A stretch of 64,000 bases of DNA, taken from Neoconidiobolus thromboides FSU 785 (lineage: Eukaryota > Fungi > Entomophthoromycota). Of the stretch, positions 9,849 through 64,000 are shown one piece after another (position 1 is the stretch's first letter; each line of letters starts with the position of its first letter). Both the position numbers and the translations under genes were made by a program. The notes under the pieces were generated by a model. It did no database searches and was not told the DNA's origin. It saw only the letters and a list, made by a program, of their open reading frames with translations. The DNA lies in assembly GCA_025603075.1 (NCBI GenBank), contig MU626359.1, positions 1 to 64,000 on the forward strand. The letters run 5' to 3'.

Positions 9849-10140
9849 TGACAATTCAATAGACTCATTAATTATAGAAATAGTCAAAATAATTTTGTCA
9901 TTTTATTAAATATTTTAAATAGTATATTAAAAACAAACATATAACTAATCGGTTATATTTGATTAATTGATATATGTAGAGTATTTGATGTATTTCTCTG
10001 ATGCAATGAATTATATGATATACAGACGACTATGTTTTCATAGATGTATATAATACAAGAGCGTTGAAGTTTATGGTTATAATATTTAGCAAAATCAATG
10101 AATTTTATTTTAATGATAATAACTATTACTCACTCGTTAT

Positions 10141-12652: not shown

Positions 12653-12759
12653 ATATGGGAATGTTTTTTTTGGTTTTATCACTTTTTCCATCTTTTAAAC
12701 ATTGTTTGAGCAGAAAGATTGTTGATAAAATTCTTCAACAAAAAAATACATCTACATAT
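12653..12759 (-). mobile_element. MITE copy 5
   Basis: TIRs slightly diverged, ATAT/ATAT; 25 bp past the stop of the 12784-13950 gene. Confidence 0.85.
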
Positions 12760-12783
12760 GAATTTATTTGAATCGTACATAAA

Positions 12784-18114: not shown

Positions 18115-18186
18115 GGCTAGCTGGCGCAATGGTAGCGCGTTGGACTCCAGATCTAGAGGTTAGAGGTTCGACTCCTCTGCTGGTCA
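18115..18186 (+). tRNA. tRNA-Trp(CCA): tRNA-Trp (CCA), copy 1
   Basis: 72-nt cloverleaf: GGCTAGC/GCTGGTC acceptor, CT-CCA-GA loop, GGTTCGACTCC T-arm, T5 terminator 3 nt downstream. Confidence 0.95.
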
Positions 18187-18298
18187 ACTTTTTATATATT
18201 CTAAATCGTTTTATGTATGTTAAATTTGAATGATTAACTAAAAATTGATGCTTAGCCTCTATCACTTACAAGATATCAAAAATGGAAAAAGATTAACC

Positions 18299-22770: not shown

Positions 22771-24116
22771 TTTTATTTTAAGATTAAAGTTTAATTGAAT
22801 TCAATTCTGTATAGTATTAGGTATGAGTTTATTATTAGTTGAAATCCAGCCTGATTTTTCTTAGTAATAATATAATTAAAAAATAATTGTTTCTTGGGTA
22901 TTAAACTGAACATTATATCATTGTTGAGTTATTAAACCAATTAAATTTGTTGATTGTGAGATCCACTTTTATTGTCCATATATGACGAAATTTATTGGCT
23001 TGAGAATGCAACTTAAAGAATAATTGGTCTTTATTTTTAGAACAGTGAATATTGCTTAATTAGCTACTTGACTATAATATAACAAAAATCTAAAATTTAT
23101 TTTAAAAACTAGATCTAAGATAATTAAAACATTGGTATATTAAATTAATCATGAAACGCTAATTTGTTATATAATTTTCATAAAAGTAATTCTATTTTAT
23201 GTAAAAGGAGTTTAATTGTTTTATTATTTGACTTTTATGATAGTTGAATCAAATTGGCTGAAAGTGGCTCATTGTTAAATAGAAATAAAATATATATATC
23301 ATTTTATACATAGGCTTTTTTATTGTCGATCTATTATGTTTATATACGCGTAAGTTTAAAAGCTCTATTGAAATCAAGGATAAAATTTTCCATTTCATTT
23401 TTTTGTCCATTTAGTATGTATGTAGCATAAATTTTTGAGAGAGTATTCAAGTAATACTGGAAAACTCTCAAATAATGGAATGCTGTATTAAAGCTCATTT
23501 CTTTGCTTCTATATTTAAGAATAGTTAAGTAAAATATTAATCAATAGACTACATTATAATTCATAATTTGCTATTAGATAGCTTTACAATTAAGGATATC
23601 AAAGTCTTATAAAGATAAGGTAAAGCAAGTTATTATTTTTGTAAGTTATAAATTATAATACAACCTATGCTATCTACTATTAAATATTATAAACAAGAAT
23701 TTTATTAAATAAGGTTATAGGTCCAGATTTCTTAAAGTTCACGATGAGATCTATTCAAAAATAAAAATACGCCACAGTGTTCTTATGGATTGTACTTTCG
23801 GATCTATTTATAAGCTGTATAAAAATTCTGAAAATTATCAAATTTAGAATAAAAATTACCTTTTTAAAAAGATATTAGAACTATCTAAATGTAGAATATA
23901 TTAATTTGATAATACATTATATTGGATTCCATTGATTTTATTATACCAGAATTTGTATTCTAATATATTAGTAAAAGCTAAAAATAAATCAGTTCTAGAT
24001 TTTATCTTTAATTAATTGATATTTATTTAAACTAACTAATATAAACTATTTTTTTCTCTTAATCATTTTATCCACTTTCTAAACAATTTAAATTAAGAAC
24101 ACTTGGTTAAAGCAGT

Positions 24117-24222
24117 ATATGGGGGTATATTTTTGTATTTAAGAATTTTACTAATGATTTTTCCACTCAAATAACACTCAAAAAATGAAGAAGTAATAAA
24201 GCCAAAAAAAACATCCCCATAT
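24117..24222 (+). mobile_element. MITE copy 8
   Basis: Both TIRs, ATAT/ATAT. Confidence 0.9.
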
Positions 24223-24486
24223 AAAAAAAGTTTGATGTTTGTTTATATTATATATTATATACACATAAAACAAACAAACTTATATTAAATAATTGAAAGA
24301 TTATGAGTTAAGTAGTTACATATTAAAATGTTAAGAAAGACTAACTATTTTATTACTCAAGTAAAAGTAAATGAACCTTGAAATTTTTGCTATTAACAAA
24401 ATAACTACATTGTAACTTACTTTTTTTATAAAAATTATAATTAAACCCTATGAGAAATGATAGCTCTATCAATCGGGTTTGAAAAA

Positions 24487-24591
24487 ATATGGGGATGTTT
24501 TTTTGATTTCATTGTTTTTCCATTTTTTAAGCGCTATTTGAGTAGAAAGATTGTTAGTAAAATTCCCAAACACAAAAAAACATTCCTATAT
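24487..24591 (-). mobile_element. MITE copy 9
   Basis: Left TIR intact, right diverged (CATTCCT), ATAT flanks. Confidence 0.85.
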
Positions 24592-25644
24592 ATTTATTGG
24601 AAATATAATTGATATGTACAGATATAACGTTTTATTTTTTATTTAAAACTTATTTTAATAACAATAAACTATAAAGATTTTTGCAGCGTTTTGAATGAAT
24701 TAATATTATCTAGAGTATTTATTTACAGCAAATAGCGCCTATTGATGTTTTTTTAGCTATATCATACATAGATTTAAAAACTTAAAATTTCCAATTTGAT
24801 TGAAGCATCAATTTAAAAATAAAGCTGTAATAAACTCTCAATAAAAATTTTGCTTAACTTGAAAATTTGCAAAAATGAAGTCTGGGAAAAAATGAACATC
24901 CAGTTTACTAGCCCATATTAACTTCAGTAGCTTGCAATCCAACGATATAAATATTATCAAATTTATTGAGTAACAACGAAATAAACATTACTGATGACCA
25001 ATGATAAAGCAAAAAAATAAAAAAAATAAAAAAATAAAAATAATGGTTTATAAAATTCCAGTTTAATAAGTAGAAAAAAGCTATTAAGAATAAAAATTCC
25101 AGTTGAATTCATATCCCTGATTTTCGAGTTAAAATTACAATTGAAAATTAATCTCAATCAAATAATTTGAAAATGTTAGAATTATAAAAGTTATTTGTTC
25201 CATATTGAAAAGAAGATTGCTAATATTTCAACTAAAGTTCAAATACACAATAGATAATAAAATAATAGATTCCATGTTTAATGAAGTCAAGTAGGAAAAT
25301 AGAATTTATGCAATCACTATTTCAATATGAATAATAAATTGAGTCATTAATAAAATAACGTGAGTAATATGATCAAAGGAACAAAAATTAAATTTAAAAA
25401 GGTAATAAAATTTGAAGTTATGACTATTTAAAGAATCTGCACCTTTGGTCTACCTCATTAATTTATTAAAATTTATTATATAATAATAATCAATATTAAA
25501 ATCTTTTTTATTCCTACTAAATTATCTATTCTAGATTTACATTGCTATTTTTTCTTATCTTTTTGTTTTGTACTTACATATTTACTTTTTATATTTTTAT
25601 TTATCTTTTAAATTTGGAACTTTACTTCAATCCCCTTTACCACT

Positions 25645-29252: not shown

Positions 29253-29574
29253 GCTTTTTACAATAGTAATAAAGATAACAAAACAATTTTTTACACTGAA
29301 AATAAACTATTACTTTCATTTATACTTTTCAATTTAAATATCAAGTATTTCAATATAGTCAAAAGTAATATTCTACATGTCAACATTAATATTCTTTTAA
29401 TGAAAATCTTTTCATTGTAAACTTAATTTTATTTTTAGCTTTTCGATACTCAAAAATAATGATTAAACGATCTCCCCTATCAACTAAAGATAATTAAATC
29501 ATTTTTAAACTAATATATTTTTGTATTTTTAACATGTAAATTTATAATAAAAATAATCTCTAAAAAAGAAGCCT

Positions 29575-29646
29575 GGCTAGCTGGCGCAATGGTAGCGCGT
29601 TGGACTCCAGATCTAGAGGTTAGAGGTTCGACTCCTCTGCTGGTCA
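29575..29646 (+). tRNA. tRNA-Trp(CCA): tRNA-Trp (CCA), copy 2
   Basis: Identical to 18115-18186; T6 terminator. Confidence 0.95.
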
Positions 29647-29765
29647 ACTTTTTTGAAGTAAATATATATGTTCTTTTTCTTTTTTATTAAATTTAAATGA
29701 GTAAGCAAATTAGAAATCGATGCTTATCTTCCATTATTTCAAGGTATTAAACCGAAAAAAACAGT

Positions 29766-29867
29766 ATTTGAGAATGTATCTTTTTATTTAAGGATTTTAT
29801 TAACAGTTTTTCCACTCAAATAGCGATTAGAAATAGAAGAAGTGATGAAACTAAAGACATCCCTGTT
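29766..29867 (+). mobile_element. MITE copy 10, degenerate
   Basis: Core TTTTTCCACTCAAATAGCG retained, ends eroded. Confidence 0.7.
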
Positions 29868-29902
29868 CAATTATTTTAGATGTTGATTATTAATTAATTA
29901 TT

Positions 29903-30006
29903 ATAAGGAGTGTTTTTTGGCTTCATTGCTTTTTCCACCTTTTAAACACTATTTGAGTAGAAAAATTGTTAGTAAAATCCTTAAATGTAGAGAAACATCC
30001 CCATAT
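29903..30006 (-). mobile_element. MITE copy 11
   Basis: Core plus ACATCCCC-ATAT end. Confidence 0.8.
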
Positions 30007-31009
30007 ACTGTAAACATTCATATCAAACTATGAAAATTGACTCCAGATTGATAGTTTAGATATTTGACTCTTACATTAGTCATATTTTATCATTTTCTGA
30101 TACTTTTTATATTTAGTTTATTTCGGTTAATAAAAAATTTAGGACATTACTCTTTGTTAATATTTAGACAATGATATTTCAGCTCTGTATTGAAAAAATG
30201 AATAAAAGAATTTGATAAGAAAGACTTCACTATACTTATTAATTGATTGATTAGTTTGAGATCTATCTTTATTTTTTTATTTTATACAATTATTTTTTGC
30301 TTTTTCAGCTTGAAAATGATTAAAACCATATATATTAAAATACATAAAATAGCCGTTTTTAAAATTTTAAAAACACATATGATTAGACACATTCAACATT
30401 AGAGGCTGTATATGTTTAATATAGAAAACTTTCAAACTTCTATTTTCTATTAGAAATTAAAAGTTAAAGCTTAAAAATTTTAAAAATGAAACAAAGACAC
30501 TCTTGAGACGTAATAATAATTTTAGAATATCATTGCACAAGATAGTAAAACAGTATGAAAATGATTCAATAGATTTAAATTGTTGAAATGAACAACCTTG
30601 ATATCATTCAATTTTTATAATATAATGATTTTATTTCTTACTTTTTTAATAATTTATTAATCAGAATAATTAAAAAATATAGTTTTTATTATGGAAAATT
30701 ATTATTAAAATAGACTGTTGTTACTTCCCAAAAATGATTTTAAAATTCTTTGTCTCCTTTAGATAGCAAGTGCCAATTCAAATAAAGCTTGATAAATCAA
30801 ACTTCAGAATCCCATAATTTAACCTTAACTAAAAATTAACCTATAGTCGAACCCCATATGATAAAATATGTTCTAGAATCGGTTGTCCAATAGAATACGA
30901 AAATTCGATCGGTAAACCAATAATGCTTAGAATCAAGCTGCCTGATTCCTAAGTTAACTATAAGTATCCCCGCAGGACTTCCTAAAGTTTTTACTTTTCA
31001 ACTTTTTTT

Positions 31010-32890: not shown

Positions 32891-33167
32891 TTTTCTTAAA
32901 TCCCCATTTTTTAACTTTATTATAACTTTTTCATGTCCTACCTTTTTTGAGAATTTTTCTTTAATAGAGCCCCAAGTAAACTAAAAAATCTCATTTTTAT
33001 AATCATTTTATTGTTTTTATTAAATTATTTTGATATGCTTTTAACCAATTTATTTTCAAAATTTATTTTTATTATTCATGTTAAAGTTTAATATTTAAAA
33101 TAGAATATTTCAATTTTACAGTTATTATAGAAATGTCTAATATCAAAACAATCAATTATTTTTCAAT

Positions 33168-33257
33168 ATATGGGAGTGTTTTTTTTGACTTCATTATTTT
33201 TTCCATTTTTAAGCGCTATTTAAGCGGAAAATTTTTTAGTATAATTTTATAAAAAAC
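33168..33257 (-). mobile_element. MITE copy 12a, one end missing
   Basis: ATAT-GGGAGTGTTTTTTTTG and core, runs directly into copy 12b. Confidence 0.8.
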
Positions 33258-33292
33258 AAATGGGGATGTATTTTTGTGTTTAAGAGTTTAAC
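33258..33292 (+). mobile_element. MITE copy 12b, left-end fragment
   Basis: GGGGATGTATTTTTGTGTTTAAGAGTTTAAC then similarity stops. Confidence 0.75.
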
Positions 33293-33551
33293 AGATGAGT
33301 CTCTGTTTGAAAAGTGAATTAGAATAAAAAAGCGAATTTATTGAACTAAAGTTGAGAAAAGTAAAATAAAATAAATACTACAAAATAAAGCACTGTTTAA
33401 ATATAGCCAAAATACAAATAAAATTACAATACATAAAAGTAACTCCTTTGATCAAATACGTTCACATTTTTATTTCAGTTTTTTTATATATTTAAAAATA
33501 GGCTAATAAAAAAGAATAAAAATTCAATGTTTTTTAAGTGGAAGGATTGAT

Positions 33552-36796: not shown

Positions 36797-38425
36797 TTAA
36801 TACTTATTCTTATGCTTTTTAAGACCACCATCATTACCTTGAGGGGTATTAACTTCTGGTTTTGGAGTAACGGTTTCTGGAGTTTTTTCAGCGTTAGTAG
36901 AGCTTGATGATGAATCATTTGGTACTTCAGTTGGGTATTTCTTTTTACCACTTGGTGTATTAGTTTCTGGTGTCTTTCCGGCTTCAGTAGAAGTAGAAGA
37001 TGAATCTTCAGGTACATTTACTGGGTACTTATCCTTTTTAGTTGGAGTATTTGTCTCTGGTTTTGGAGTATTTCCATTTTCTGGAGTTTTACCAGCTTCG
37101 GTAGAGGTTGAAGACGAATCGGTTGGTATATTTACTGGGTATTTATCTTTTGGTTTTTCGCTAGATGGTATACCTTGTGGAACAGAGTTATTTTGTTGTG
37201 GAGTATTGTTCTGTTGTGGAGTATTGTTTTGTTGTGGAGTATTGTTTTGTTGTGGAGTATTGTTTTGTTGTGGAGTATTGTTTTGTTGTGGAGTATTGTT
37301 TTGTTGTGGAATACCATTTTCTGGAACTGAGTTATTTTGAGGGGTATTAATCTCGGGTTTTGGGGTATTACCATTTTGTGGAACTTTATCAGCTTGAGTA
37401 GAACTAGTAGAAGTTTCTTCAGGTAAATTTACTGGATACTTGTCCTTTTTAGTTGAAGTATTATCCTCTGGTTTTGGAGTATTTCCATTTTCTGGAGTGT
37501 TAGTTTCATCGGTGGAAGTAGAAGATGAATCAGTAGGTAACTCTACTGGATACTTGTCCTTTTTAGTTGAAGTATTATCCTCTAATTTTGGAGTATTTCC
37601 ATTTTCTGAAGTATTAGTTTCAGGTTTTGTAGTGTTACCACTTTCTGGGATGGATTTATCTTGTGGAGTATTAGTTTCTGTTTTTGGAGTATTTCCATTT
37701 TCAGGGGTCTTACCAGCTTCGGTGGAAGTAGAAGATGAATCAGTAGGTAACTCTACTGGATACTTGTCCTTTTTAGTTGAAGTATTATCCTCTAATTTTG
37801 GAGTATTTCCATTTTCTGAAGTATTAGTTTCAGGTTTTGTAGTGTTACCACTTTCTGGGATGGATTTATCTTGTGGAGTATTAGTTTCTGTTTTTGGAGT
37901 ATTTCCATTTTCAGGGGTCTTACCAGCTTCAGTGGAAGTAGAAGATGAATCAGTAGGTAACTCTACTGGATACTTGTTTTTGCCAGTTGGGGTATTCGTC
38001 TCTGATTTTGGAGTATTCCCATTTTCTGGAGTCTTTTCAGCATTGGTGGAGCTAGATGATGAATCTTCAGGTACATTTACTGGATACTTGTCCTTTGATT
38101 TTCCACCAATGGGTTTTTCAGCATTTGGATTGAGACCAGTTGGCACAACAATTGGTGTATTTTGAGGAGTGTTTGCATTATTATTATCAGTTGGTTTTAA
38201 AACGTCTACTACAGCAGGACCAGCCTGAGGAGTACTTCCTTTATTACTCTCCATAATTTTTTGAATAATTTGTTTTAATTGATTAACATCAGTAATTTGT
38301 TCTGGGATTTTAACACCACTTTGTGCTAAGTTAGAAGCATCAATGCTTGGATTTCTACGAAGTAAAGGGCTTCCTTGTAAAAAGGATAATAAATTTATCA
38401 AAATCAAGGCAGTGGTAGTTCTCAT
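36797..38425 (-). CDS. Secreted repetitive T/P/N/E/S-rich protein with KYP(V/T) repeat modules
   Basis: 542-aa ORF; signal peptide, LLRR dibasic site, eight K-Y-P-(V/T) modules, no Cys. Confidence 0.8.
   Translation of the reverse strand: MRTTTALILINLLSFLQGSPLLRRNPSIDASNLAQSGVKIPEQITDVNQLKQIIQKIMESNKGSTPQAGPAVVDVLKPTDNNNANTPQNTPIVVPTGLNPNAEKPIGGKSKDKYPVNVPEDSSSSSTNAEKTPENGNTPKSETNTPTGKNKYPVELPTDSSSTSTEAGKTPENGNTPKTETNTPQDKSIPESGNTTKPETNTSENGNTPKLEDNTSTKKDKYPVELPTDSSSTSTEAGKTPENGNTPKTETNTPQDKSIPESGNTTKPETNTSENGNTPKLEDNTSTKKDKYPVELPTDSSSTSTDETNTPENGNTPKPEDNTSTKKDKYPVNLPEETSTSSTQADKVPQNGNTPKPEINTPQNNSVPENGIPQQNNTPQQNNTPQQNNTPQQNNTPQQNNTPQQNNTPQQNNSVPQGIPSSEKPKDKYPVNIPTDSSSTSTEAGKTPENGNTPKPETNTPTKKDKYPVNVPEDSSSTSTEAGKTPETNTPSGKKKYPTEVPNDSSSSSTNAEKTPETVTPKPEVNTPQGNDGGLKKHKNKY
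37188..37313 (-). repeat. 18-bp coding minisatellite (PQQNNT x7)
   Basis: TTGTGGAGTATTGTTTTG units on + strand. Confidence 0.9.
37511..37977 (-). repeat. 210-bp near-perfect coding tandem repeat (~2.2 units, 70 aa each)
   Basis: GAAGATGAATCAGTAGGTAACTCTACTGGATACTTG recurs at 37521, 37731, 37941. Confidence 0.9.
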
Positions 38426-39503
38426 GTTGAATCAATCAATGTATATATTCTAGTTCCAATCAATGGGTATTTAGTAAAGTAATAAGGTGGATTGTATATA
38501 AGAAATTAATATAATATACTAGTTTTTTAAAAATTTAGTGAGTTGAAATATGATGCTTATATACTATTAACTTCTTATTTATTATATCATTAAGTATATT
38601 ATTTAACGGTTTTGTTTTATTATATTATTATAGTTTAGATATTAATTGTTCCCTTACCAATTTTTATCTTAATTGTATTGTTTATTTTAATCAATTAGTG
38701 ACGCTATTATGTGCGGTTCAACTTATATTAAATCTGCTATTTTTTTAGCTCAAGAATCCGATTTGAAATATTCAATGAAGTAGAATCGACTCATGATTGA
38801 AAGTGTAATAGTTATATTAAAAATCCGCTATTTTTTATAGTGGCTAAAAGAGCTAGCTCTCATATAGCTAATACAGATTTGTTTCAAATTTAATTAAACT
38901 AATAGTTTTGTTCTTGGAACTTGAGCTATTTTTTTAATATCAATAGAGATTTTAGAAGCTTTTATAAGTATTGGCTCTACTTGTTAAATAACTAATCAAA
39001 GCAAGATAACATTCTGAACCAAATAAGTTACTTTAATTATATATCATTCAAATAAAAGATAACTAGATATTAATAACTATAAGGTTAGTTCGACTATAAT
39101 GTTTTTATAAAAAATAGTAACGAGGGGTACAAAAGTAATTAAATATTTGTTGGAGCATAAAGTTTATGTGGAACCTATGCTTGAATAGCTCTTAAAACAG
39201 AAGGATTTTATTATTTTATTTAAACTTTCCCTGTTTAAAACTGGATGATTTTAATAAAAACAATACAATTCAAATATTCTAAATTTAACTAATTACCTTG
39301 CTAGCCGGTTCTATCTAAATAACTTAGTCCTCAAATTCACTAACTTAGGCATCTGTCATTTTCATTTTATCTAAAAAAGCACTTATTGCCATCGCCTTTC
39401 AAGAAAAAAGATGATTATATCAATATAATATTATTTATTCATCAAGATCGACATAATAGTTGATTAAGTCTAAACACTCAAGCGTTGAAAATTGATAAGA
39501 AAT

Positions 39504-39608
39504 ATATGGGTATGTATTTTTGTATTTGAGGATTTTACTAACAATTTTTCCACTCAAATAGCGTTTAAAAGATGGAAAAAATAATGAAGCCAAAAAACAT
39601 CACCATAT
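39504..39608 (+). mobile_element. MITE copy 14
   Basis: Both TIRs, ATAT/ATAT. Confidence 0.9.
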
Positions 39609-39631
39609 ATTATTTGTATAGCTTTTAATAT

Positions 39632-39737
39632 ATATGGGAGTGTTTTTTTTGACTCCATTATTTTTCCATTTTTTAAGTACTATTTAAAGCGAAAATTTGT
39701 TAGCAAAATTCTTAAACACAAAAATACATCCCCATAT
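39632..39737 (-). mobile_element. MITE copy 15
   Basis: Both TIRs, ATAT/ATAT; 23 bp from copy 14, inverted. Confidence 0.9.
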
Positions 39738-39913
39738 CTTATTATTGTGTTAACCTACATCATTTAATCTTATTTAGATCTACTGCTTACGCAACTAAAA
39801 TCTAGAATTAAAACATAAACCAACTACTGAATATTTAATAAAGGCATAATTTTATTACATTTACATTACTGATTTAACTCAAAAAATAATACAAATCTTT
39901 TCTATCGTAGCTT

Positions 39914-40554: not shown

Positions 40555-40645
40555 TTTCGTTTATATAGTTTGGTAGATAGTCCTGTTTTATGTTTCCAAA
40601 ATTAAACCCTTAATGAGTGATTACTTTGTGTTCAGTAAGTTCGAA

Positions 40646-40747
40646 ATATGGGGATGTATTTTTTTGTTTAAGAATTTTACTAACCTTTCCACTCAAATAA
40701 CGCTTAAAAATAGAAAAGTAATGAAGCCAAAAAAAACATCCTCATAT
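40646..40747 (+). mobile_element. MITE copy 16
   Basis: GGGGATGT...CATCCTC, ATAT/ATAT; 92 bp upstream of member A. Confidence 0.9.
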
Positions 40748-41983
40748 TATACTTAAATTAGCTATAATGGCTCAATTTGAATTTAACTTTGTTTGTTTAA
40801 ACTACAAGGCGTTATCTACAATAAAAGGTACTTCAACTATTCTGATATATTTTATGATTCTATTTGTAATTTTTTTATCAAGTCAAAATATACAAATATA
40901 GTTGCCAAATGAACTAATTGAAAAAACTGAATGCCCAGAATTAAAACATTTGTACACAAATGATAAATATTATAATAAAACTAGTAAAAAGAGAATATAA
41001 ATAAATAAAAGATTATAGAAAATTTATGTTCAATATTATGATGTTTGTATGATTTACCTTTATTAAAAGCATTAAAAAAAGTTGTAAACTACAAGTTTTA
41101 AGCATATATTTTGAATTTTACTTATTTAAAAATGTTAATTTATCAATAATCAATGCGTTTTTTAAACAATATATATATTGCTTATGAATATTGCTTATAA
41201 TATAGTATTAATATCATAGCATAGCATTTGAATAATAAAACAGTCAACTTTCAAATACTCCAGTCATTAAAAATAACTAATAAAATTTAACTAAATTTGA
41301 CATTATTTAAAATCGTAAGCCAACCTTTAACAAATTGATTATAAGATTTCAATTTTTTTCTTATGAATTTTCATAATATGATAATATCATTATAAATTGA
41401 TCTTGAAATAATTTACATTCAATAATCATATGTTTGACTTTTATTTGCAATACCTTAACTTCATTCTCTCAGTTTGTTTAAGCTTTTTTCTTATCCTTAG
41501 AGTCCCTTCATATTTTTATTATCCTAGCTAACTTCTGGGCCATTCAGCCTTATCGCATCAAGTTTCTACCCTTATGGCATCTAAATATCAGCTTTTTATG
41601 TAGCCATTTTATCATGCGCCTATTCGCATTTAAGTTTAGATGTGGATGTAAAAGTTATACAGGACAGCACTATAGATTTTTAATAAAAATGAATTGAAAA
41701 TTATAAGGATTCAAAATCAACATTGCTTCATCAAATAGGATTTAAATACTTTAAAGACTAAATTATAAACAGTTGTATGGTTTAAAAATATGCAATGCTA
41801 CATTTAGAATAGCTGTTTATCATACAAGTAAATTAATCGTTTAATCAATTATCAAATTTTAAATACAAATATAATAATTTTCCTTTTTAGGAAAAATTCA
41901 AAATTCAATTTCGAATCTAATGATTCAAATAGGATAAAAATCACTCAAAATCAAGGATTTTAGAAAACTTCTTTCTTTAAATC

Positions 41984-48153: not shown

Positions 48154-48398
48154 AGATGATCTAGCTTACAAAAAGAATAATAAAATGTTAAAGGCTATGT
48201 TAGATATCAATGCTTATTTTCGATTATTATTTGTTTTATTTTATTTTAACTAACAGCTACAGAGTGTCTATGTTTAATATAGGATGTTCTAAATTAACAC
48301 AATATAGTAAACAAAGAACCAGCTAGATAATGTTACTAAACTTGAGAAAAAAATAGTTCAGAATGCTATAACTTATTACCTTCAAAGTAGACTGCTGT

Positions 48399-48503
48399 AT
48401 GTTGAGATGTATTTTTATATCTAAGAATTTTACCAACAATTTTTCCGCTTAAATAGCGCTTAAAAAATGGAAAAAATAATGAAGTCAAAAAACACTTCCA
48501 TAT
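48399..48503 (+). mobile_element. MITE copy 17
   Basis: Full core, diverged ends. Confidence 0.85.
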
Positions 48504-48679
48504 AACAAAATCTATCTTTTAATAATCAATAATAATAATCTTAATAGTTAGTAATTTTTGTAATTTGATAAATTAACATTCATTTTTTATCAAGTATTTT
48601 TGTATTATTATATTAGTAAGTTGTTCTTTAAATATATATAACAATTAAATTTTTTCAAAGCATTAAAAAATAAATAAAA

Positions 48680-48780
48680 ATATAGGGGCGTTTTTTTGGG
48701 TTCATCACTTTTTCCATCTTTTGAGCGCTATTTAAGCAGAAAAATTGTTAGTAAAATTAAACAAAAATACATTCTCTTAT
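48680..48780 (-). mobile_element. MITE copy 18
   Basis: Full core, diverged ends. Confidence 0.8.
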
Positions 48781-48896
48781 CGTAAAAGTCAAACTTGAGT
48801 AATTTGATTTTTAATACTATAAATTTATTGAATTTACAATTAAATGGTCTCAAAAATTATAAACAAGAAAAGCACTATAACTATAGAAACATCATA

Positions 48897-53263: not shown

Positions 53264-54526
53264 TTAAGCAAACTCAATTTTACTATTTCCATTGAAGGTG
53301 GCAGCTCTAGCGGACCCAGCAGTTGGAGGAGGATGGGATTCATCACCAAGATGACCAGTCTTAAAATTTCTTCTATCCTTGTCAAGGTGAGGGACTACGT
53401 CTTTATTTTTACTAACGACCTCAGTGTTTCCGTTAAAAGTTTCAATAACAAATCTTCCTTTGAAAGTAGCTGGGAGGGAGATAAAAGTGTTTCCATTGAC
53501 AGTAGCTGAGTCATAGTTGATTTCATGATGGGGGCGATTAGCTTCATGAGACTCATCATGAAGTACTTTTATACTAGTGTTTCCATTCACGGCCTTTGCA
53601 TGTACTTTATTGGAATTCTTGGCTGTTAAATCAACGTTACCATCAACAGTAGCACCAACTACATGATCAGCTTTAATATTAGTGGTAGTGACATGGCCAT
53701 GAGTGGCAAATAAAGCTACACTTTGACCGGTGGTACCTTCAACATGAAGGTTACCAGAAACGGTGCCAAGGTTGATTTGATTAACAATCAAGTCTTTGAT
53801 TTTAATATCACCACAAACCAATTTAAGTTCCAACTTTTGTAAAGTTAATTTGCCTTTAAAATCAGTTTCTATATCGCCGACTGGTAAATGAGACCAAAAT
53901 TTTTCAAGGTGATCCAAGTCATTAGGAAGATAAATTAAAATATTAGCCTTAATACATTCCCCATTATTGTGGAATACTCTTGGCCCACGAATACTGAAAT
54001 CATAAGAATCTTTATTAATATGGAAACCTACATGAACATCATCGGCTACTTTAACATTACTGATAAAGATTTCAGGTTCTATTTTAATGTTTGGTGAATC
54101 GTGACGTGCAAATTTTACAGTACTGAATTTGACGCTTCCAATCATGCCAACTCCAAAGGAGGTATGCTCTTTGGCGTTGAATTCAAAGGTTTCCTCTATT
54201 TTGTATGGAATGGTAGGATTGCAAACTGGTCTGGGTCCATGGCCATGACCTGGACCATGACCCGGTCCGTGTTCATGACCAGGGTGATAATAGGGTTTCA
54301 TTTCACTATTTGCGTGCTGAAATGGGCAGTTGAATTGAACAGTTGAAGCTAATTGATAAAAACCAAAGACTAATAAAGAATAAAGAATAAGTTTAGTCAA
54401 CACTCTTAATACACTGCACTTTCTTTTTTTGGGTTCTTCTGGTAAAGGCTCAGTATTGTTACCCTCTTCGCATAATAATGCTTCTTTTTCGTTATGTACT
54501 GGATAATACGCTTTTGTATCACTCAT
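53264..54526 (-). CDS. Membrane-anchored DUF4097-like beta-solenoid protein, divergent paralog 3
   Basis: 420 aa; TM, His/Gly/Pro linker, same two Cys anchors (CNPT..., ECIKA) as the tandem pair, xxGN/GD turn repeats. Confidence 0.75.
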   Translation of the reverse strand: MSDTKAYYPVHNEKEALLCEEGNNTEPLPEEPKKRKCSVLRVLTKLILYSLLVFGFYQLASTVQFNCPFQHANSEMKPYYHPGHEHGPGHGPGHGHGPRPVCNPTIPYKIEETFEFNAKEHTSFGVGMIGSVKFSTVKFARHDSPNIKIEPEIFISNVKVADDVHVGFHINKDSYDFSIRGPRVFHNNGECIKANILIYLPNDLDHLEKFWSHLPVGDIETDFKGKLTLQKLELKLVCGDIKIKDLIVNQINLGTVSGNLHVEGTTGQSVALFATHGHVTTTNIKADHVVGATVDGNVDLTAKNSNKVHAKAVNGNTSIKVLHDESHEANRPHHEINYDSATVNGNTFISLPATFKGRFVIETFNGNTEVVSKNKDVVPHLDKDRRNFKTGHLGDESHPPPTAGSARAATFNGNSKIEFA

Positions 54527-55970: not shown

Positions 55971-56165
55971 GCTAAGTTTAAACTTATTAAAAAAGACTAT
56001 GATAAGTATACTCATTAAATATATCGAAGTAACTAACGTAAGTCTTAGCTGAAAAATACACTTGGATTTAAAATAAATACAGCTAAACCATTTTAAATTG
56101 TTATAATTAATTGAACTATAATATTTGAGTTTGCTATCCATAAGGTAACTATATATTAAGGGGCC

Positions 56166-56271
56166 ATATGGCGATACATTTTTGTGTTTAAATATTTATT
56201 AACAATTTTTCTGCTCAAATAATACTTAAAAGATGGAAAAAACAATGAAGCCAAAAAAAACAGCCTTATAT
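56166..56271 (+). mobile_element. MITE copy 21 (empty sites at 61181 and 62910)
   Basis: Inserted in ggggcc-ATAT-tttt of member B promoter; ATAT on both sides. Confidence 0.9.
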
Positions 56272-56318
56272 TTTTAAAATCATATAAGATAAAAATCATC
56301 TAATGTTATTAACTGAAA

Positions 56319-56883
56319 ACGAACTTTAATACTGTTGCTTCTCCTTTTTCATTTTGATTATCTTTTATTGCTCTAGAATTTCCTTTTAATTACATGTACT
56401 GAGGGTATTAATGATAAAATCATCAGTAACTTTAAAGGATTGTTACATACATGTAATGCCTAACTGATTGCCGATGATTGCCAACTTGAATGAAAAATGT
56501 TTCGAGATAGAAATAAAAAAGATATAGCTGACATTATTGAGTACTATAATAACTCATACTATGGCCTTTCTTTTAAGGCCCGATACCCAAATAGATAATT
56601 TAATAGTGAGCAGGTGCTAGTTTTCAGTAGTTTTAAGGAGACACTAGACGAATTGGCCCTATTAGTTAAAATAGCGAGGACGATAGCGTCAGAAGCAAAA
56701 GCGTCAATGATAAAGGCGATATTTCAAATTGACTTATTGCTATTACAACCAACTTTGAACAGATTTAAGGAGTGCAAAACAAAGTTGAATTTGAAAAGTC
56801 TCAAGGCGGAATCAATAAAGTATCTGGAGAGTTCGCGAAAGGAAATAGAAAAATTTATTGTAGATCATATCCTAGATATTTGA
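56319..56883 (+). pseudogene. Small secreted protein family member B (pseudogene)
   Basis: ACG in place of start; GINDKIISNFKGLLHTCNA*LIADDCQLE*KM, LVFSSFKETLDEL, RFKECKT align with 61249-61818. Confidence 0.8.
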
Positions 56884-57822
56884 ATATATCTAAAAAAAAA
56901 TCCACTTCAAGTCTCTTTTTAACCACTTGGACTAATAATGTACTCTACAGCCAGTCTAAAGAGATTTATTTAGGAATTTCATTCATTTTCATTTAAACAA
57001 TTTAAATTTAAATACAATTAAGCTTAAACAAAACAACCACATTGTTCTTTGAATCAACCTAGCATTATATATGCAATAAATTTCTATTTCTATGAAATGC
57101 TTAGTAGTTAGTTTAAAATTTAAAATTTTAGTTCTTTGTTAAAACGTAAGCTAATGCCATAAATCCAATAATTATAGTCAAATCGATTTATGCTAGATTT
57201 CGTATAAAATATAATCTTAAACAAGGACAAGTATATTAGTAAAATCTATATAAATGATGTATATTTTTATAATATTTTTAATGTTTATTGTTTTAGTTAT
57301 CATAAACTTTTGTTGATTTTCATATATAAATCAAGTAAGCTGATTAAAATTTTAGTACTATTAGAAACTTAATAGTGTTTTCATTATGTCAATTTCCAGT
57401 GCATATACATCATATACAATATTACAAAATATCAGACCATCAATTTTTATGATTCTTCATTATAAAACAATAAAATGATAAATTGTAAAAATAAATGATA
57501 TGCTATTCAAATATTTAAATTATTTTGTAATACTGTAACTCTTTATTTGATTTAGTATGATTTTTTTGATTGTAAATTTTTTATTTATTTAACAAAGCTA
57601 CATTCGAAAATTATAATCGTAAGATATACAAAAGTAGTTAAAGGATCCTTTGTCAAAACTAGATCCTATAGTTCAAACAAATAGAGTTAGATCTAATTCA
57701 AATCAGTATAACTACTTCAAGTTCGATATTTTATTTTGCTGGTTAAAGGGTTTTTACTTATCAAAGAAGCTCCATTTTTAAAAGCATGTAAGTAAAAAAC
57801 CATGCAACTGTATCAACAAAAA

Positions 57823-58390
57823 ATGAGATTTGACAATTTTGCCTCTACTTTTTTGATTTCTTTAACTTTTATTGTTGCTACCCTCCCTCCTAATGATCAT
57901 GGCTTAAAGCCCATTGGTGATAAAATTCTTAATATCGTCGAAGTATTTTTATTTGTCCAGGATGGCCAAAAAATTGCTGATAACTGCCAGCCTAAACGAA
58001 GTATTTCACAAGTTCAGAGTATATATGAATTTAATTCCATCTTTGATGCCTACGGGGAATCTCACCTCAATGTTTTATATCAAAATCCAGTCAGAATCAA
58101 CGAATTTGATACTTAATGACATTAAATCATAGAGGTAATCAAATTGGCCCAAGATCAATTTGCTATTCATAGAGAAAGAATAAAAAAATAGCCTTTAAAA
58201 GTGAATCTATTGGTACCGAAATAAGCCTCGGTCAAATATTCAAAGGGTGTGTATCTTCCAAAGAATATCATGTAATCTGTGTTCAGCTTGTAGATATATC
58301 CAAATGTTCTTGGGATAGAGGTAAACTCAATATAAGAAAATTACGCTCTAAATTTGATATAACCAAAAAGAAGCTTTTGATATTATAAAA
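57823..58390 (+). pseudogene. Small secreted protein family member C (truncated at 58116, decayed 3' half)
   Basis: MRFDNF...DHGLKPIGDK...DGQKIADNCQPKRSISQV aligns with intact member; stops after ~97 codons; KGCVSSKEY downstream. Confidence 0.7.
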
Positions 58391-59096
58391 AGGTCTGAAA
58401 GTATTGATTTTTAATTACTTGTGCTTAAAATGACTTATGAAGTTGCTCTAAAGATCATTTAAAGTGTCTTTCGAGTTAATTAAACAATATTATATAGTTA
58501 GTTTCAATTGTAATATTATGACTTTAGATACATAAATATTTATATTGATTTAAGGTTAGATAGCGTAGTCTGAGGTAATTTCATTTAATTAATAGTAAAA
58601 ATTTCATTTATTTGTAAGACTTTTTACTAAGGTAAAAATTCAAAAAATAATAAGTATAGCCATTGAAACTTATGCTGATAGTACATTTGTATATATATTT
58701 CAGTGTTTAAATGTGTAAGTTAAGTTAAACTTACATTGTTTTCATATATAAGTTAGGTAATTTGAGTTAAACAAATGGAAATGTTTTTTATTAATTGTCT
58801 TTTTTGCTATTTTTTTAAATTAGAAATTAATTAGCCATTATATTGTTTAAGTTTCGATATGTGCTAAATAACTGTTCATTTTAATAGAAATTAAATTAAT
58901 AGCCTTGAAATCACTAGATTGAACAAGCAACTATAAATTCATCACTTGTCAGCACAAACTTGAACTTAAGCATCTGCCTTAATTAATTTTTGAAAAAATA
59001 GTAAAAAAGGGTAAAATAAAAAACATTCCCAAATACCAAGCAAACTTTAATGGTATTTCTATCTTAATAAAACTCATAGCTTTAATTCTTTAAACT

Positions 59097-59195
59097 GTAT
59101 AATGTGTTTTTGAATTTATTAAGAATTTTTCTGCTCAAATAGCACTTAAAAGATGAGAAAAGTGATAAAGCCAAAAAAATTATCTCTGTACATAT
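59097..59195 (+). mobile_element. MITE copy 22, degenerate
   Basis: Core TTTTTCTGCTCAAATAGCACTTAAAAGATG retained, ends eroded. Confidence 0.7.
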
Positions 59196-59268
59196 TATAT
59201 TAAATGTCACTATTTTTTGTTTTTATAATAACTTAGCGTATCAATTAAAGTATACTACATAAAGTATA

Positions 59269-59370
59269 ATATGGGGTGTATTTTTTGGTTTCATTACTTT
59301 TTACATTTTTTAATCGCTACCTGAGCAGAAAAATTCTTAATAAAATTAAACAAAAAATACATCCTCATAT
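59269..59370 (-). mobile_element. MITE copy 23
   Basis: GGGGTGT...CATCCTC, ATAT/ATAT. Confidence 0.85.
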
Positions 59371-59526
59371 AGTGTAATTTTAGTTAATATCATTTGAGTT
59401 GTTATAATAAAATTAAAAGCTGCAAACCATTTTATCAAAGAATGTAAAGCAGATAGAATTAAAATTGATTCAAGTAATTATAGTAAGTAGAGTATGCGTT
59501 TTAAGTTTCCTGTAAGTGGGGTAATC

Positions 59527-59632
59527 ATATGGGGATGTATTTTTGTATTTAAGAATTTTACTGACAATTTTTCCACATAAATAGCGCTTAAAAAATGGAA
59601 AAATAATGAAACTAAAAAAAACAGCTCCATAT
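59527..59632 (+). mobile_element. MITE copy 24 (empty site at 56151)
   Basis: Inserted in ggtaatc-ATAT-attgagg of member D promoter. Confidence 0.9.
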
Positions 59633-59708
59633 ATTGAGGAGTAATATTTGTAGAAAAATACATAGCAAAAATTTACTACTTTAAGATGTTTAACTATATC
59701 AATCAAAG

Positions 59709-60362
59709 ATGAAGTTTAATGCTTTTATTTGGCTTTTACTACTGAAGCATCCAGATCTAAATATCATGGTTTAAGAACTATTGGTGATGAAGTTATCGAA
59801 AGTTTTAAGAGATTATTGTATATCCATGATGATCAATTAACTACCGGTAACTGTTAAATTGAATAAAAGAATGTACAAGCTGGAAAAAGAGAGGAATTCG
59901 ATATTATCTTTCGAGCTTGTGATCAGACTTTTAATGATCTTTTAAATCTAAATCAACTTAATATAAATGAATTTAATATTAAGCTACAGAAAACTCAATG
60001 CAGAATTAAAATAGCTCGAGCAATTCACTGCTACCAATGGAGCTACCAATGGATATAAGAATATGATAAATAATGGAGGAAATAACAATAGTAATATCGG
60101 AAACGGGTATGCTGCCAGCAAACTCAACTTAGAATAAAGTTGAAAAGACTGCAAATCTTGCGTTGGTTGTAATGGATTCCTCACTAGAGCCTTCAGAATA
60201 TTTAGATTGAAGTTAAATTATTACTCTCATAGAGAACAACGATTAACCATTGAGGTTGTATATATCTTAAGAATTAAAAATGTTAGGTGTGACCTTAAAC
60301 TTGTTCCTTCCTTAGCTACTTGTACGAAAGAAGCTATAAAAAGCTATTCTAAATATCGTTAA
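59709..60362 (+). pseudogene. Small secreted protein family member D (pseudogene)
   Basis: MKFN..., frameshift, YHGLRTIGDEVIESFKRLLYIHDDQLTTGNC*IE*K, RACDQTF, KDCKS. Confidence 0.75.
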
Positions 60363-60669
60363 ATTATTTTTTAATATAACTTTTCAGAATAGATCCAAAG
60401 AAAGTAAATTTCACTAAATATTTAATGATATTTTAAATTTCAATTTGATGATTTTACGTGCAAATAAGAATATTAATATAATATTTAATTAATATAGCTT
60501 AATTTAACATAAAGTTCTCAAAGGCGATAGTTCTATCCATCCTTACGATATTTCATCAATAATAAAACTCTAAAGCAATCGACACAGATATAAAAATCAA
60601 TGCTAATATGCATGTTTTCTAAAAAATTTGTAATTGTTAAATGTTTAAATTAAGCTAATTATTTTCAGT

Positions 60670-60775
60670 ATATAAAGCTATTTTTTTTGGTTTCATACTT
60701 TTTCCATTTTTTGAGCGTTATTTAGGCGGAAAAATTGTTAATAAAATTGCTAAGCAAAAATATATTCCCACTTAT
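60670..60775 (-). mobile_element. MITE copy 25, degenerate
   Basis: Core recognisable, TIRs eroded. Confidence 0.7.
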
Positions 60776-61152
60776 TGTATATTTATAATAAATATTACAA
60801 GCAATAAAAGCCAGTTATAATTTTAAAAAAATAAAAGAAAAATAAGAACCTGTTTTTTTCCACTCATTTCCTTAAATATCTTCAATAAAGGCAAGCTGTG
60901 CATACGCTATAATATTGAGTCTATATTATTTATGTAATATTATTTATTCGCTATTTTTATTCAACTAGGTGGTCATATTATGTAAATATATTTGTTAAGC
61001 TTAGAATATAAAAAATACAAGTATACTCGCGGAATATGCCTAAGTAGATAAAGTGCTCCTTATTGGAAGTGGATTCCCTCAGTTAAAATAAATAAAGCTA
61101 ACCTAAAATTAAATCAACCCAATTAATTCAAGTATTATTTTTAGTTTGCCGT

Positions 61153-61189
61153 CCACGGAATAATTATGTATTAAGGGGCCATATTTTTT
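61153..61189 (+). promoter_or_regulatory. Conserved proximal promoter block of the secreted family (member E)
   Basis: CCACGGAATAATTATGTATTAAGGGGCCATATTTTT, matched upstream of F (62882-62917) and recognisable upstream of A, B, D. Confidence 0.6.
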
Positions 61190-61248
61190 AAAGTATATAA
61201 GACAAAATTGTATCGATTAAAGACATCATTGAACTTCACCAAACAAAA

Positions 61249-61818
61249 ATGAAATTTAGTACTACTACTTTTACTTCTTTAATTTGCTTAACTTCCTCTG
61301 CTGCAGCATTTTCTTTTAATCACCATAGCTTAAGAGGTATTAGTGACGAAATCATTGGTGGCTTTAAGGGATTATTGCATATCCGTGATGTCCAGCCAAT
61401 TGCCAATGATTGTCAATTTGAGCAAAAAATGTCCCAAGTTAAAAATAAAGAAGATTTTATTAACACTATTAAGTACTGCGACAACTCTTACTATGATCTT
61501 TTGTATGAAGGTAAATACTCAAGTAAGGAACTTAATAGTGAACGGGAACAGCTTTTCAATAAATTTAAGGTAGCCTTAGAGAAACTCGATCCTAATCAAA
61601 AGAACAATGAAATTACTTTTGAAGATGGGCCTATTAATTACGTATTAGACCTTAATAAAAGATATAAAGAATGTAAATCTCCCACTGATTATCGTGGACT
61701 CTACAATGAAGTCAAAGATACATATGATCGCCTTAGAGAAAATCGTTATGTTGATCAGAGCCGATTACAAGTTGAATACGCAGACATCAAAAACAAATTT
61801 TCTAGTGTTCTAAATTAG
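61249..61818 (+). CDS. Small secreted protein family member E (only intact copy), unknown function
   Basis: 189-aa ORF, signal peptide MKFSTTTFTSLICLTSSAAA, three mature-region Cys, helical-looking charged sequence; five broken paralogs in window. Confidence 0.85.
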   Translation: MKFSTTTFTSLICLTSSAAAFSFNHHSLRGISDEIIGGFKGLLHIRDVQPIANDCQFEQKMSQVKNKEDFINTIKYCDNSYYDLLYEGKYSSKELNSEREQLFNKFKVALEKLDPNQKNNEITFEDGPINYVLDLNKRYKECKSPTDYRGLYNEVKDTYDRLRENRYVDQSRLQVEYADIKNKFSSVLN

Positions 61819-62378
61819 ACTTTTAATATTGGGTTTTAACTGCTCGCCTTTAAAATGGCTTATAAAGATACTTTAAGGATTATTTAGTTTATTCCTAAAT
61901 TATTATAATAAATATAGTTACAACTTTATTATATGTCCAATAGTTTATTTACGCTTTTACTTTGCAGCTTTAATTATATAAATGTACTTTTGATATTCAG
62001 ACAAACAATATAGCTTAACTTTGGATAATGTATTCAATGGTAAGTTTTGTGTATTTGCCCTCTCCTTTTATTAAAAAATAAATCTTTGGATAGCAATAAG
62101 TATAAATGTAGAAGTTCATGCTAATAATTATATTATTTATACTTGATATCTAATGTTTGTTTACTAAATAGTATATACATTTTGAGTTAAAACACTTACT
62201 GTTTCTTATAACAACTTAGGCTATATTAATTACAATACATCTATATTTAATATAATAGCAGTATTTTAATTGATATTGATTGATCTACTATAAAGAATCA
62301 AAACACAAAAGTCATTTTACCAGTGAGTGTAGGCCAAATATAACTAAACCATTCCTGCTAACTACAATCAATTAAACT

Positions 62379-62477
62379 ACATGGAAATGTTTTTTTAGTT
62401 TCATCGCTTTTTCATTTTTAAAGTTCTATTGAATGAAAAAGACAGTAAATCTTTGAACGAAAAAGGCATCTTTATGT
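62379..62477 (-). mobile_element. MITE copy 26, strongly degenerate
   Basis: GGAAATGTTTTTTTAG start and eroded core. Confidence 0.6.
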
Positions 62478-62700
62478 GCTATAATATTGAGTTTAAATTA
62501 CTATAAAATCTTATCTGTTTATGTTTTTCGACTTAATTCATTATAATTTTAACTACTTGAATTATAAAATTTTTTATCAAAACATACTTTTTGTTTAGTT
62601 ATATTATATTGGACGATTGTATTTATCAAATTTAGACTTAAATAAAAAAGATGTACTCATAGAACATACTCAAGTAGATAAAATACCTTTTGTCAGAAGT

Positions 62701-62804
62701 ATATGGGAATGTATTTTTTATTTAAGAATTCTACCAACAACCTTTCCACTCAAATTAGCGCTTAAAAATGGAAAAGTAATGGAATAAAGAAAACATCGCC
62801 ATAT
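62701..62804 (+). mobile_element. MITE copy 27
   Basis: GGGAATGT...ACATCGCC, ATAT/ATAT; 157 bp upstream of member F. Confidence 0.85.
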
Positions 62805-62881
62805 CCTTGTAGTTTGAACAAATAAAGCTAAACTAAAACTAAATCCATGGAATTGATTTGAGTTCATATTTCGTTTTCCTT

Positions 62882-62917
62882 CCACGGAGTAATTATGTAT
62901 TAATAAGCCATATTTTT
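62882..62917 (+). promoter_or_regulatory. Conserved proximal promoter block (member F)
   Basis: CCACGGAGTAATTATGTATTAATAAGCCATATTTTT. Confidence 0.55.
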
Positions 62918-62960
62918 AAAGACATGTAAGATAAAAATTATTGAACTTTATTAAATAAAA

Positions 62961-63305
62961 ATGAAATGTATTACTATTACTTTTACTAGTATAGCGTCTC
63001 CTTTTAACTACCTTGGTTTAAGGGCTATTGGTGATTTTAAAGGATTATTACATATTCACGAGAGCTAGTCAACTGCTGATGATTATCAATTTGGGTAAAA
63101 AATGTCTCAAGCCAAGCTAAAGATAAAGAGAATTTTATTAAGATTATTAAATATTGTGACAACTTATTCTATGATCTTTTGTATGATGGTAAATATTCAA
63201 GCAAGGAACTTAATAGTGGATGGAGGCTGGTTTCCAGTAGATTCAAGGAAGCATTAGACGAACTTACTCCTAATTAAAAAAATAATAGTGTTGTTTTTTG
63301 AAAAT
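62961..63305 (+). pseudogene. Small secreted protein family member F (pseudogene, closest to E)
   Basis: MKCITITFTS...FKGLLHIHES*STADDYQFG*KMSQA...KYCDNLFYDLLYDGKYSSKELNS; deletions, stops, frameshift, 3' loss. Confidence 0.85.
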
Positions 63306-63430
63306 GTAACTGCAGGTTTAATGGGATTTCCATGATAGTTTAAAGTAGTATCATTACGATAAAAATTTATTTAAATTATATCGCTAATTTTTGTATATCA
63401 ATTTTATTTGAAATATTATAGCATAGTAAA

Positions 63431-63537
63431 ATGTGAAGATGTATTTTTGTGTTTAAGAATTTTACTAACAAATTTTCCACTTAAATAGCGCTTGAAAAAT
63501 GAAAACAATAATGAAACTAAAAAAAACACTCCCATGT
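63431..63537 (+). mobile_element. MITE copy 28
   Basis: Full core; flanked by direct repeat ATGT/ATGT. Confidence 0.85.
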
Positions 63538-63553
63538 AATACTTAATTAAAGC

Positions 63554-63661
63554 ATATGAGGGTGTATTTTTGTGTTTTTGAATTTTACTAATAATTTTTC
63601 CGCTCCAAATAGCGTTTAAAAGATGGAAAAAAAGTGATGAAGCTAAAAAACACCCCCATAT
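63554..63661 (+). mobile_element. MITE copy 29
   Basis: GAGGGTGT...ACACCCCC, ATAT/ATAT. Confidence 0.9.
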
Positions 63662-63720
63662 GTAAATACATTTTTGAGTTTAAGAGCTCTACATAAGGTA
63701 CATTTAATACCATTTAAATT

Positions 63721-63748
63721 GACAAAAAAAACAAAGACATCCCCATAT
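63721..63748 (+). mobile_element. MITE copy 30, right-end fragment
   Basis: CAAAAAAAACAAAGACATCCCC-ATAT only. Confidence 0.6.
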
Positions 63749-64000
63749 GTTTGTAGGAGAAATTAAACGGTTTTGTTAATTTTTATTTGAAATTTAAAAT
63801 CAAAAAATGTAAAAAATAGAATCTTGAGCTCAGATTAAACTATTTAAAAATAAGATAGAATTAAAACTACTCCTCTACAAATAAGTTAGCAATATATTAA
63901 TTACAAACTTAAGATTTGATTTGGTAAAACATCTGCTTTATTAACTAAACACTATTGGTTTGTTTATGACAATAAAAGTATAAAAGAGATAATAATAATA

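Follow-up and report, generated by a model that had tools for sequence, protein, structure and literature searches.

Filled and empty insertion sites upstream of paralogous genes in Neoconidiobolus thromboides point to past transposition of an abundant miniature inverted-repeat element with a 4-bp gain at ATAT

An orphan gene family with a shared upstream block

We analyzed bases 1 to 64000 of contig MU626359.1 (assembly GCA_025603075.1) of the fungus Neoconidiobolus thromboides FSU 785, a stretch of 64,000 nucleotides hereafter called the window, in which copies of a short non-coding repeat, a miniature inverted-repeat transposable element (MITE), lie upstream of four of the six members of an orphan gene family. 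The readable contig totals 71.8 kb. The window is AT-rich (G+C of about 26%), and its genes include those for a four-RRM poly(A)-binding protein with an MLLE domain, a Nipped-B-type cohesin loader, a GH17 glucanase, C2H2 and Zn2Cys6 factors, and several DUF4097 proteins; this gene content identifies the window as fungal nuclear DNA.

Using tblastn with member E as the query, we found six members of the family, designated A to F. Member E (61249-61818, plus strand) is the sole intact one and encodes a protein of 189 amino acids with a signal-peptide-like N terminus. Member A lies at approximately 40525-39998 on the minus strand, and the others lie on the plus strand: B at approximately 56319-56850, the truncated C at 57802-58116, D at approximately 59709-60016 (ATG at 59709-59711), and F at 62961-63298. 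Stops or lost start codons were present in all members but E and possibly the truncated C. The start codon of B is degenerate (ACG, 56319-56321). Inspection of the alignment by eye showed that the start codon of A has apparently been lost as well, reading AGG, and the CAA codon for Gln59 of E (61423-61425) corresponds to TGA in pseudogene B (56491-56493) and to TAA in pseudogene F (63096-63098). No homologue of E outside the contig was found among 5.8 billion proteins, and none of the Atlas look-alikes of protein E had a credible score. In an RNA run from the source organism, contig depths were approximately 3,300 to 24,000 for E, 57 for D, about 4 for B, and 0 for C. Judged by sequence, the family is predicted to consist of orphan genes for secreted proteins.

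The members share a block of upstream sequence. The block of B (56040..56318, plus strand) has homologous counterparts at 40563-40860 on the minus strand (A) and, on the plus strand, at 57650-57801 (C), 61060-61248 (E), 62600-62960 (F), and 59440-59707 (D, by profile search). A TATA-like motif is found about 35 to 50 bp before the start codon (CATATAAG in B and TATATAAG in E), and the RNA contig over E reaches 360 bp upstream of its ATG. From its position and the TATA-like box, the block is a putative promoter. The MITE of B lies approximately 10 bp upstream of the TATA-like motif.

Pairwise similarity between the upstream regions was scored as z against dinucleotide shuffles. The values for B-E (z=28) and B-F (z=17) indicate clear homology, and the upstream region of A was significantly similar to those of B, C, and F (z=6 to 9). 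That of D was only weakly similar (z values of 0.9 to 2.7), and it is a profile search that establishes its homology to the others. For this search, a profile built from the other five upstream regions was run against the whole window. With the MITE excised, D was matched at E=1.1e-8 (29.8 bits), and the next match outside the family had an E value of 0.93. The unedited D sequence gave two collinear profile matches that ended at the borders of the MITE. A lack of homology between the segments had been named beforehand, in the first-pass annotation of this DNA, as an outcome that would undo the case for insertion; the z scores of B against E and F and the profile match of D speak for homology instead.

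Filled and empty sites upstream of the paralogs

Four of the upstream regions hold one MITE each, which consists of a core between two ATAT tetranucleotides. We give all positions on the plus strand. In B, the filled site spans 56166..56271 (ATAT at 56166-56169, a 98-bp core at 56170-56267, ATAT at 56268-56271) and ends 48 bp upstream of the ACG start. In D, it spans 59527..59632 (ATAT at 59527-59530, a 98-bp core at 59531-59628, ATAT at 59629-59632), 76 bp upstream of the ATG. These two sites had been described in the first-pass annotation, and the strings and coordinates quoted there for both are all present in the sequence. The site in A spans 40646..40747 (ATAT at 40646-40649, a 94-bp core at 40650-40743, ATAT at 40744-40747), and, seen from its gene, the element points the other way from those in B and D. 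The site in F spans 62701..62804 (ATAT at 62701-62704, a 96-bp core at 62705-62800, ATAT at 62801-62804) and lies approximately 155 bp upstream of the ATG.

In the alignment, each of these sites has unoccupied counterparts in other paralogs. The B-site is represented by a single ATAT in E (61181-61184), F (62910-62913), and D (59644-59647). The D-site, which lies 15 bp from the B-site, appears as ATAT in B (56151-56154) and as ATGT in E (61166-61169) and F (62895-62898). The A-site appears as ATAT in B (56121-56124), C (57726-57729), and F (62866-62869) and as ATTT in E (61137-61140). At the F-site, E reads GGAT (61071-61074), and F with 4 bp kept aligns with E free of gaps.

We aligned the upstream regions of A to F with MAFFT after excising each core together with one ATAT. 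The alignment showed no gap at the B or the D junction, and so the second feared outcome, extra gaps at the junctions, did not materialize. In a retained-base scan, the core was excised, k=0 to 8 flank bases were kept, and the result was realigned to the empty paralogs. The optimum was 4 bases whether B was compared with D, E, and F or D with B, E, and F; it shifted against the most diverged paralogs, which carry no ATAT at the site. In the profile test of D, k=4 led all other values by 4.9 bits or more. An ungapped anchoring of 35-bp flanks had also given 4 bp, namely ATAT, for B versus E, B versus F, and D versus B. This procedure produced spurious AT-rich matches for the more diverged pairs and was replaced by the scan and the profile test.

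The net gain at the filled sites is thus the core plus 4 bp at ATAT. Alignment, scan, and profile test agree that B and D carry two separate insertions 15 bp apart, each empty in the other paralogs, and that the gain is the element plus 4 bp, which excludes a duplication of AT only. Both points had been claimed at first pass, and the case is stronger than claimed there, as A and F bring the number of independent insertions in this homologous upstream block to four. Four of the six paralogs (A, B, D, and F) therefore carry independent insertions within approximately 260 bp of the start codon. By a rough estimate, about 1.3 would be expected from the intergenic density of the element, so that this occupancy is at most a mild excess.

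The MITE family

Repeat finding and an nhmmer profile located 29 copies in the window; over the 71.8 kb of contig the count was 31, or one per 2.2 kb, in both orientations. None of the window copies overlaps an open reading frame (ORF) of at least 90 amino acids, and the element itself contains no ORF. The consensus core is 99 bp long (90 to 100 bp in the copies), begins with GGGGATGT, and ends with ACATCCCC. Of its first 15 bases, 14 agree with the reverse complement of the core, and the termini of approximately 15 bp (GGGGATGTWTTTTT) are thus terminal inverted repeats (TIRs). A young copy folds into a hairpin along its whole length (-25 kcal/mol, z=-7). When the copies are aligned, similarity stops exactly at the flanking ATAT on both sides, and nothing is shared beyond it. 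In three DNA runs, contigs that stem from copies elsewhere in the genome likewise lose their match exactly at the outer edge of the ATAT, with loose contig ends before 59527, before 55864, and behind 55970. Short, non-coding, uniform in length, present in high copy number, equipped with TIRs, and flanked by a target duplication that comparison with empty sites reveals, the repeat is a MITE.

The core was flanked by ATAT on both sides in 19 of the 31 copies and by ATGT on both sides in 2 (931-1045 and 63425-63541). ATAT makes up 1.4% of the 4-mers in the window; AAAT, ATTT, AATT, and TTAA are all commoner and never occur as paired flanks. An alternative explanation involves no transposon, so that the repeat and its ATAT would spread by recombination or gene conversion or the empty sites would be alignment artefacts of AT-rich DNA. 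The weak pairwise similarity of the D upstream region would suit such an account. However, the copies are dispersed, in both orientations and between unrelated flanks, the combination of TIRs with direct flank repeats is characteristic of transposition, and the two flanks of D are collinear by profile (E=1e-8 after excision). We consider this explanation scarcely credible.

Contig depth summed over the element was thousands of times the single-copy depth in the three DNA runs, a sum that is not a copy number. Extrapolating the density in the window to a genome of approximately 25 to 30 Mb gives about 10^4 copies genome-wide, and the depth agrees with this figure in order of magnitude. Divergence from the consensus, expressed as the Kimura two-parameter (K2P) distance, ranged from 0.056 to 0.43 among the copies. 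This range indicates that the family is old and was amplified over a long time, and no copy in the window looks recent. Transitions dominate the substitutions relative to the consensus; per site, C>T and G>A occur about three times as often as A>G and T>C. The copies drift strongly towards A+T.

When the 71.8 kb were searched for orphan termini and longer elements, only two copies outside the window, a rearranged copy (about 33167-33300), and a short variant (about 63664-63750) came up. The rearranged copy is a minus-oriented MITE in which the reverse complement of the last ~30 bases stands in their place; a terminal inversion would account for it, and so would a joining of two partial copies. 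The short variant is the last of three elements in a row at 63425-63750, where it follows full copies at 63425-63541 and 63549-63665. It is approximately 86 bp long and has one ATAT in common with the second full copy, as would be predicted for new copies inserting into the ATAT beside an existing one. The MITEs cluster in the same spacers instead of being evenly spread. Pairs of plus and minus copies 130 to 640 bp apart were seen in five intergenic regions (9102-9854, 24106-24595, 29760-30011, 39497-39740, and 48390-48783). A metagenome scan with an 18-base terminus returned at least 120 loci, each listed with one single match. As nhmmer found no real copy (0) in them, we regard these matches as due to chance.

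Timing of the insertions

The upstream regions of the paralogs differ from each other by K2P distances of 0.34 to 0.71, and the copies inserted in them are closer to the consensus (0.068 in A, 0.087 in D, and 0.22 in the old copy of B and in F), which indicates that the insertions followed the duplications of the gene family. Conversely, the MITE could be ancestral at all four sites and have been precisely excised from the paralogs that are now empty. Precise excision occurs in some cut-and-paste families, for example piggyBac, and the empty sites do have exactly one ATAT. As each of the four different sites is filled in only one of the six paralogs, this scenario would require many independent precise losses, and insertion after duplication is by far the more economical account. 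In addition, copies that stand 0.07 to 0.22 from the consensus are hard to reconcile with residence in upstream regions that are 0.34 to 0.71 apart. Ancestral presence followed by excision is, on this evidence, very improbable.

We searched three other, independent DNA data sets for the presence or absence of the B and D insertions, considering the best-supported joints listed for each. These sets contain 81 to 91% of the 31-mers of the stretch, corresponding to an identity of approximately 99.3 to 99.7%. In two of them, contigs connect the B copy with its unique flanks at both ends, and in the third they do so at the right end; every such junction is covered by over 31 bases in each direction. 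For D, the contigs reach 19 to 26 bases into the copy from its flanks and break inside the MITE. The check in other isolates proposed at first pass thus revealed the B insertion in all three sets and the D insertion as far as the contigs reach, and it brought to light no case of absence. Since both are present in the DNA of other isolates, with no empty allele among the joints listed, the B and D insertions appear to be old and apparently fixed among the isolates sampled, D less firmly so. Transposition, as claimed in the first-pass annotation, is therefore supported by the filled and empty sites as a past event; the mobility is historical, with copies that have diverged from the family consensus by 6 to 43% (K2P) and no empty allele among the joints listed for the three sets.

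Interpretation and size of the target duplication

Together, these results suggest, with a probability that we put at about three in four, that the repeat is a high-copy, non-autonomous cut-and-paste MITE of Sola type, which duplicates 4 bp at ATAT and was inserted after the duplications of the gene family. According to this model, a transposase supplied in trans would cut ATAT, and rarely ATGT, with a 4-nucleotide stagger, and repair of the stagger would leave the tetranucleotide duplicated on both sides of the element. Once the six-member family had arisen by duplication, the element would have been inserted separately upstream of A, B, D, and F, using a different ATAT in each case, and the sister copies would keep the pre-insertion state.

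Several observations weigh against this model. Owing to the periodicity of ATAT, these filled and empty sites can also be read as the result of a TA duplication by an element that ends in T..A or under an asymmetric 3-bp model. At the A-site, k=3 scored slightly above k=4 against B and C. The scan of the F-site was flat (best k of 3 to 5 against B, C, and E, 8 against A, and uninformative against D), and this site consequently says little about the size of the duplication. No transposase or longer element with the same ends was found in the 71.8 kb read; for this reason, the superfamily has to be deduced from the duplication alone. Furthermore, Sola elements are very rare in fungi (PMC5751038). 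With respect to current activity, no two of the MITE copies are identical, and no joint that skips the B or the D element was present among those listed for the three data sets.

The two copies with paired ATGT flanks help to distinguish between these models. Taken alone, the ATAT sites would even fit a blunt insertion of AT-core-AT. A direct, as opposed to inverted, ATGT match is what a duplication predicts and what a TIR does not. The direct match of this rarer 4-mer therefore favors a duplication that includes at least the third position, and it speaks against an ATAT that belongs to the inverted repeat, against blunt insertion, and against the strict TA target of Tc1/mariner elements. As a rough estimate, independent mutation would yield about 0.05 such pairs in 31 copies.

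One 2-bp model is a Stowaway-like MITE derived from Tc1/mariner/pogo, in which the element is T-core-A, only the central TA is duplicated, and the outer A and T reflect a preference for ATAT. Stowaway MITEs are Tc1/mariner-derived, short, hairpin-like, AT-rich, and gene-proximal, and they duplicate only TA. The decomposition into T-core-A fits the filled and empty sites equally well. Nevertheless, the ATGT/ATGT flanks would mean a duplication of TG instead of TA, the outer A and T are nearly invariant, far beyond what a flank preference would give, and a Tc1-like element with these ends was not seen in the window. A duplication restricted to TA is thus at odds with the two ATGT/ATGT copies, in what is a small sample of 31. 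We regard a Stowaway-like origin as unlikely, even though Tc1/Mariner elements are the main DNA transposons reported in Conidiobolus coronatus, where few others were found (PMC5751038).

A 3-bp duplication would be produced by a Tourist-like MITE (PIF/Harbinger), if ATA or TAT were duplicated and one extra terminal base were present on one side. The GG-rich terminus of our MITE is reminiscent of Tourist ends, and the slight lead of k=3 at the A-site would agree with such a duplication. On the other hand, this model needs asymmetric element ends, k=4 was best at B and D, the two well-aligned sites, and PIF/Harbinger elements duplicate TWA, which neither ATA nor TAT matches. On these grounds, we hold a Tourist-like (PIF/Harbinger) origin to be most unlikely. 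A piggyBac origin does not fit either. This superfamily resembles the present MITE in that it duplicates a palindromic, AT-only 4-bp target and has G/C-triplet termini (CCC...GGG). Its target is TTAA, whereas the MITE is flanked by ATAT, although TTAA is the commoner 4-mer in the window, and the MITE has the terminus GGGG...CCCC.

Comparison with Sola and other MITEs

The target duplication inferred at first pass is borne out in B and D as a net gain of 4 bp at ATAT. An AT-rich duplication of 4 bp is what would be expected of a Sola element, and it is seen here both in the net gain and in the paired flanks (19 ATAT, 2 ATGT), with the periodicity of ATAT allowing a less probable 2-bp reading. 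Because of this 4-bp AT-rich duplication, the family most probably belongs to the Sola superfamily and would be Sola2-like. AWWT duplications of 4 bp are described as a hallmark of Sola1 (PMC3845634), and ATAT, AAAT, and ATTT duplications are given for the Sola2 elements of dictyostelids (PMC3627910). A survey of fungal cut-and-paste transposons recorded Sola only in Rhizophagus and in a few isolated cases, and it pointed out that Pfam has no Sola model (PMC5751038). The Repbase rule for non-autonomous elements asks for an equal duplication length and for terminal positions 1 to 11 that match a classified element (PMC4455052).

The Sola2 elements of dictyostelids (DFa and PPa; Bao and Jurka 2013, PMC3627910) share with the present family 4-bp AT-rich duplications, and their TIRs are short (12 to 21 bp). 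They differ in being several kb long and in encoding a transposase, whereas the MITE is a non-coding derivative of approximately 99 bp in a fungus. Moreover, its target is nearly always ATAT, with ATGT as the sole paired variant seen; the comparison is one of duplications and TIRs in their general form. The Sola1_NA MITEs of Bombyx mori and Rhodnius prolixus (PMC3845634) are alike in that they are non-autonomous and high-copy, have a 4-bp target (AWWT/AWDT), and have a GG terminus. Unlike the MITE described here, with its core of ~99 bp, different terminus, and density of approximately one copy per 2.2 kb, they are 194 to 709 bp long, have TIRs of 28 to 36 bp (GGACCGTTT...), and are present in 83 to 263 copies.

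The fungal mimp elements, which count among the Stowaway MITEs, are found upstream of effector genes of Fusarium and thus, like the present MITE, near genes for secreted proteins. Compared with Stowaway and mimp, the present family is alike in being a short, hairpin-like, AT-rich, gene-proximal MITE upstream of (predicted) secreted-protein genes, and it is unlike them in its net gain of 4 bp and its two ATGT/ATGT copies. In the literature that we searched, no description of MITEs in Conidiobolus or Neoconidiobolus was found.

Significance of the insertions

Comparing filled with empty sites among paralogs is the cheapest way to prove directly that a repeat family is mobile, and it also reveals what insertion does to the target. 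Here, the net duplication of 4 bp at ATAT points to Sola, a superfamily recorded in very few fungi (PMC5751038). The element is mechanistically ordinary and reveals no new mechanism, and it is unusually abundant for a fungus. As the family is very dense and gene-adjacent, it matters for genome annotation and for the evolution of regulatory regions. The insertions may also have had an effect on transcription.

A bolder proposal, which we offer tentatively and consider rather doubtful as a whole, is that a single Sola2-derived MITE family of ~99 bp has reached approximately 10^4 copies, about one per 2 kb and several percent of a compact genome of ~25 to 30 Mb, and is strictly intergenic, in an entomophthoralean fungus and thus in a kingdom from which Sola is almost absent. 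If so, this would be the densest load of a single MITE family reported in a fungus, and a horizontal arrival of the parent element would be suggested. Repeated landings upstream of lineage-specific secreted-protein genes might then have altered or silenced their expression.

Other features of the window

Two genes for tRNA-Trp(CCA) lie inside a 105-bp direct repeat (18089-18193 and 29549-29653), whose copies are 92% identical and 11.5 kb apart. On the minus strand, 36797-38425 holds an ORF of 542 amino acids with no Pfam match. It contains nested tandem repeats, with units of 210 bp and 114 bp and an 18-bp unit repeated about 8 times, and its sequence looks like that of a repetitive cell-surface protein.

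In searches for paralogs of the DUF4097 protein and of protein E on other contigs of the genome, only the window's own proteins were returned. Three DUF4097 (toastrack) paralogs are located at 10991-13950 and 53264-54526. Two of them are adjacent and 50% identical, and a MITE copy (12648-12762) lies in the spacer between the adjacent pair.

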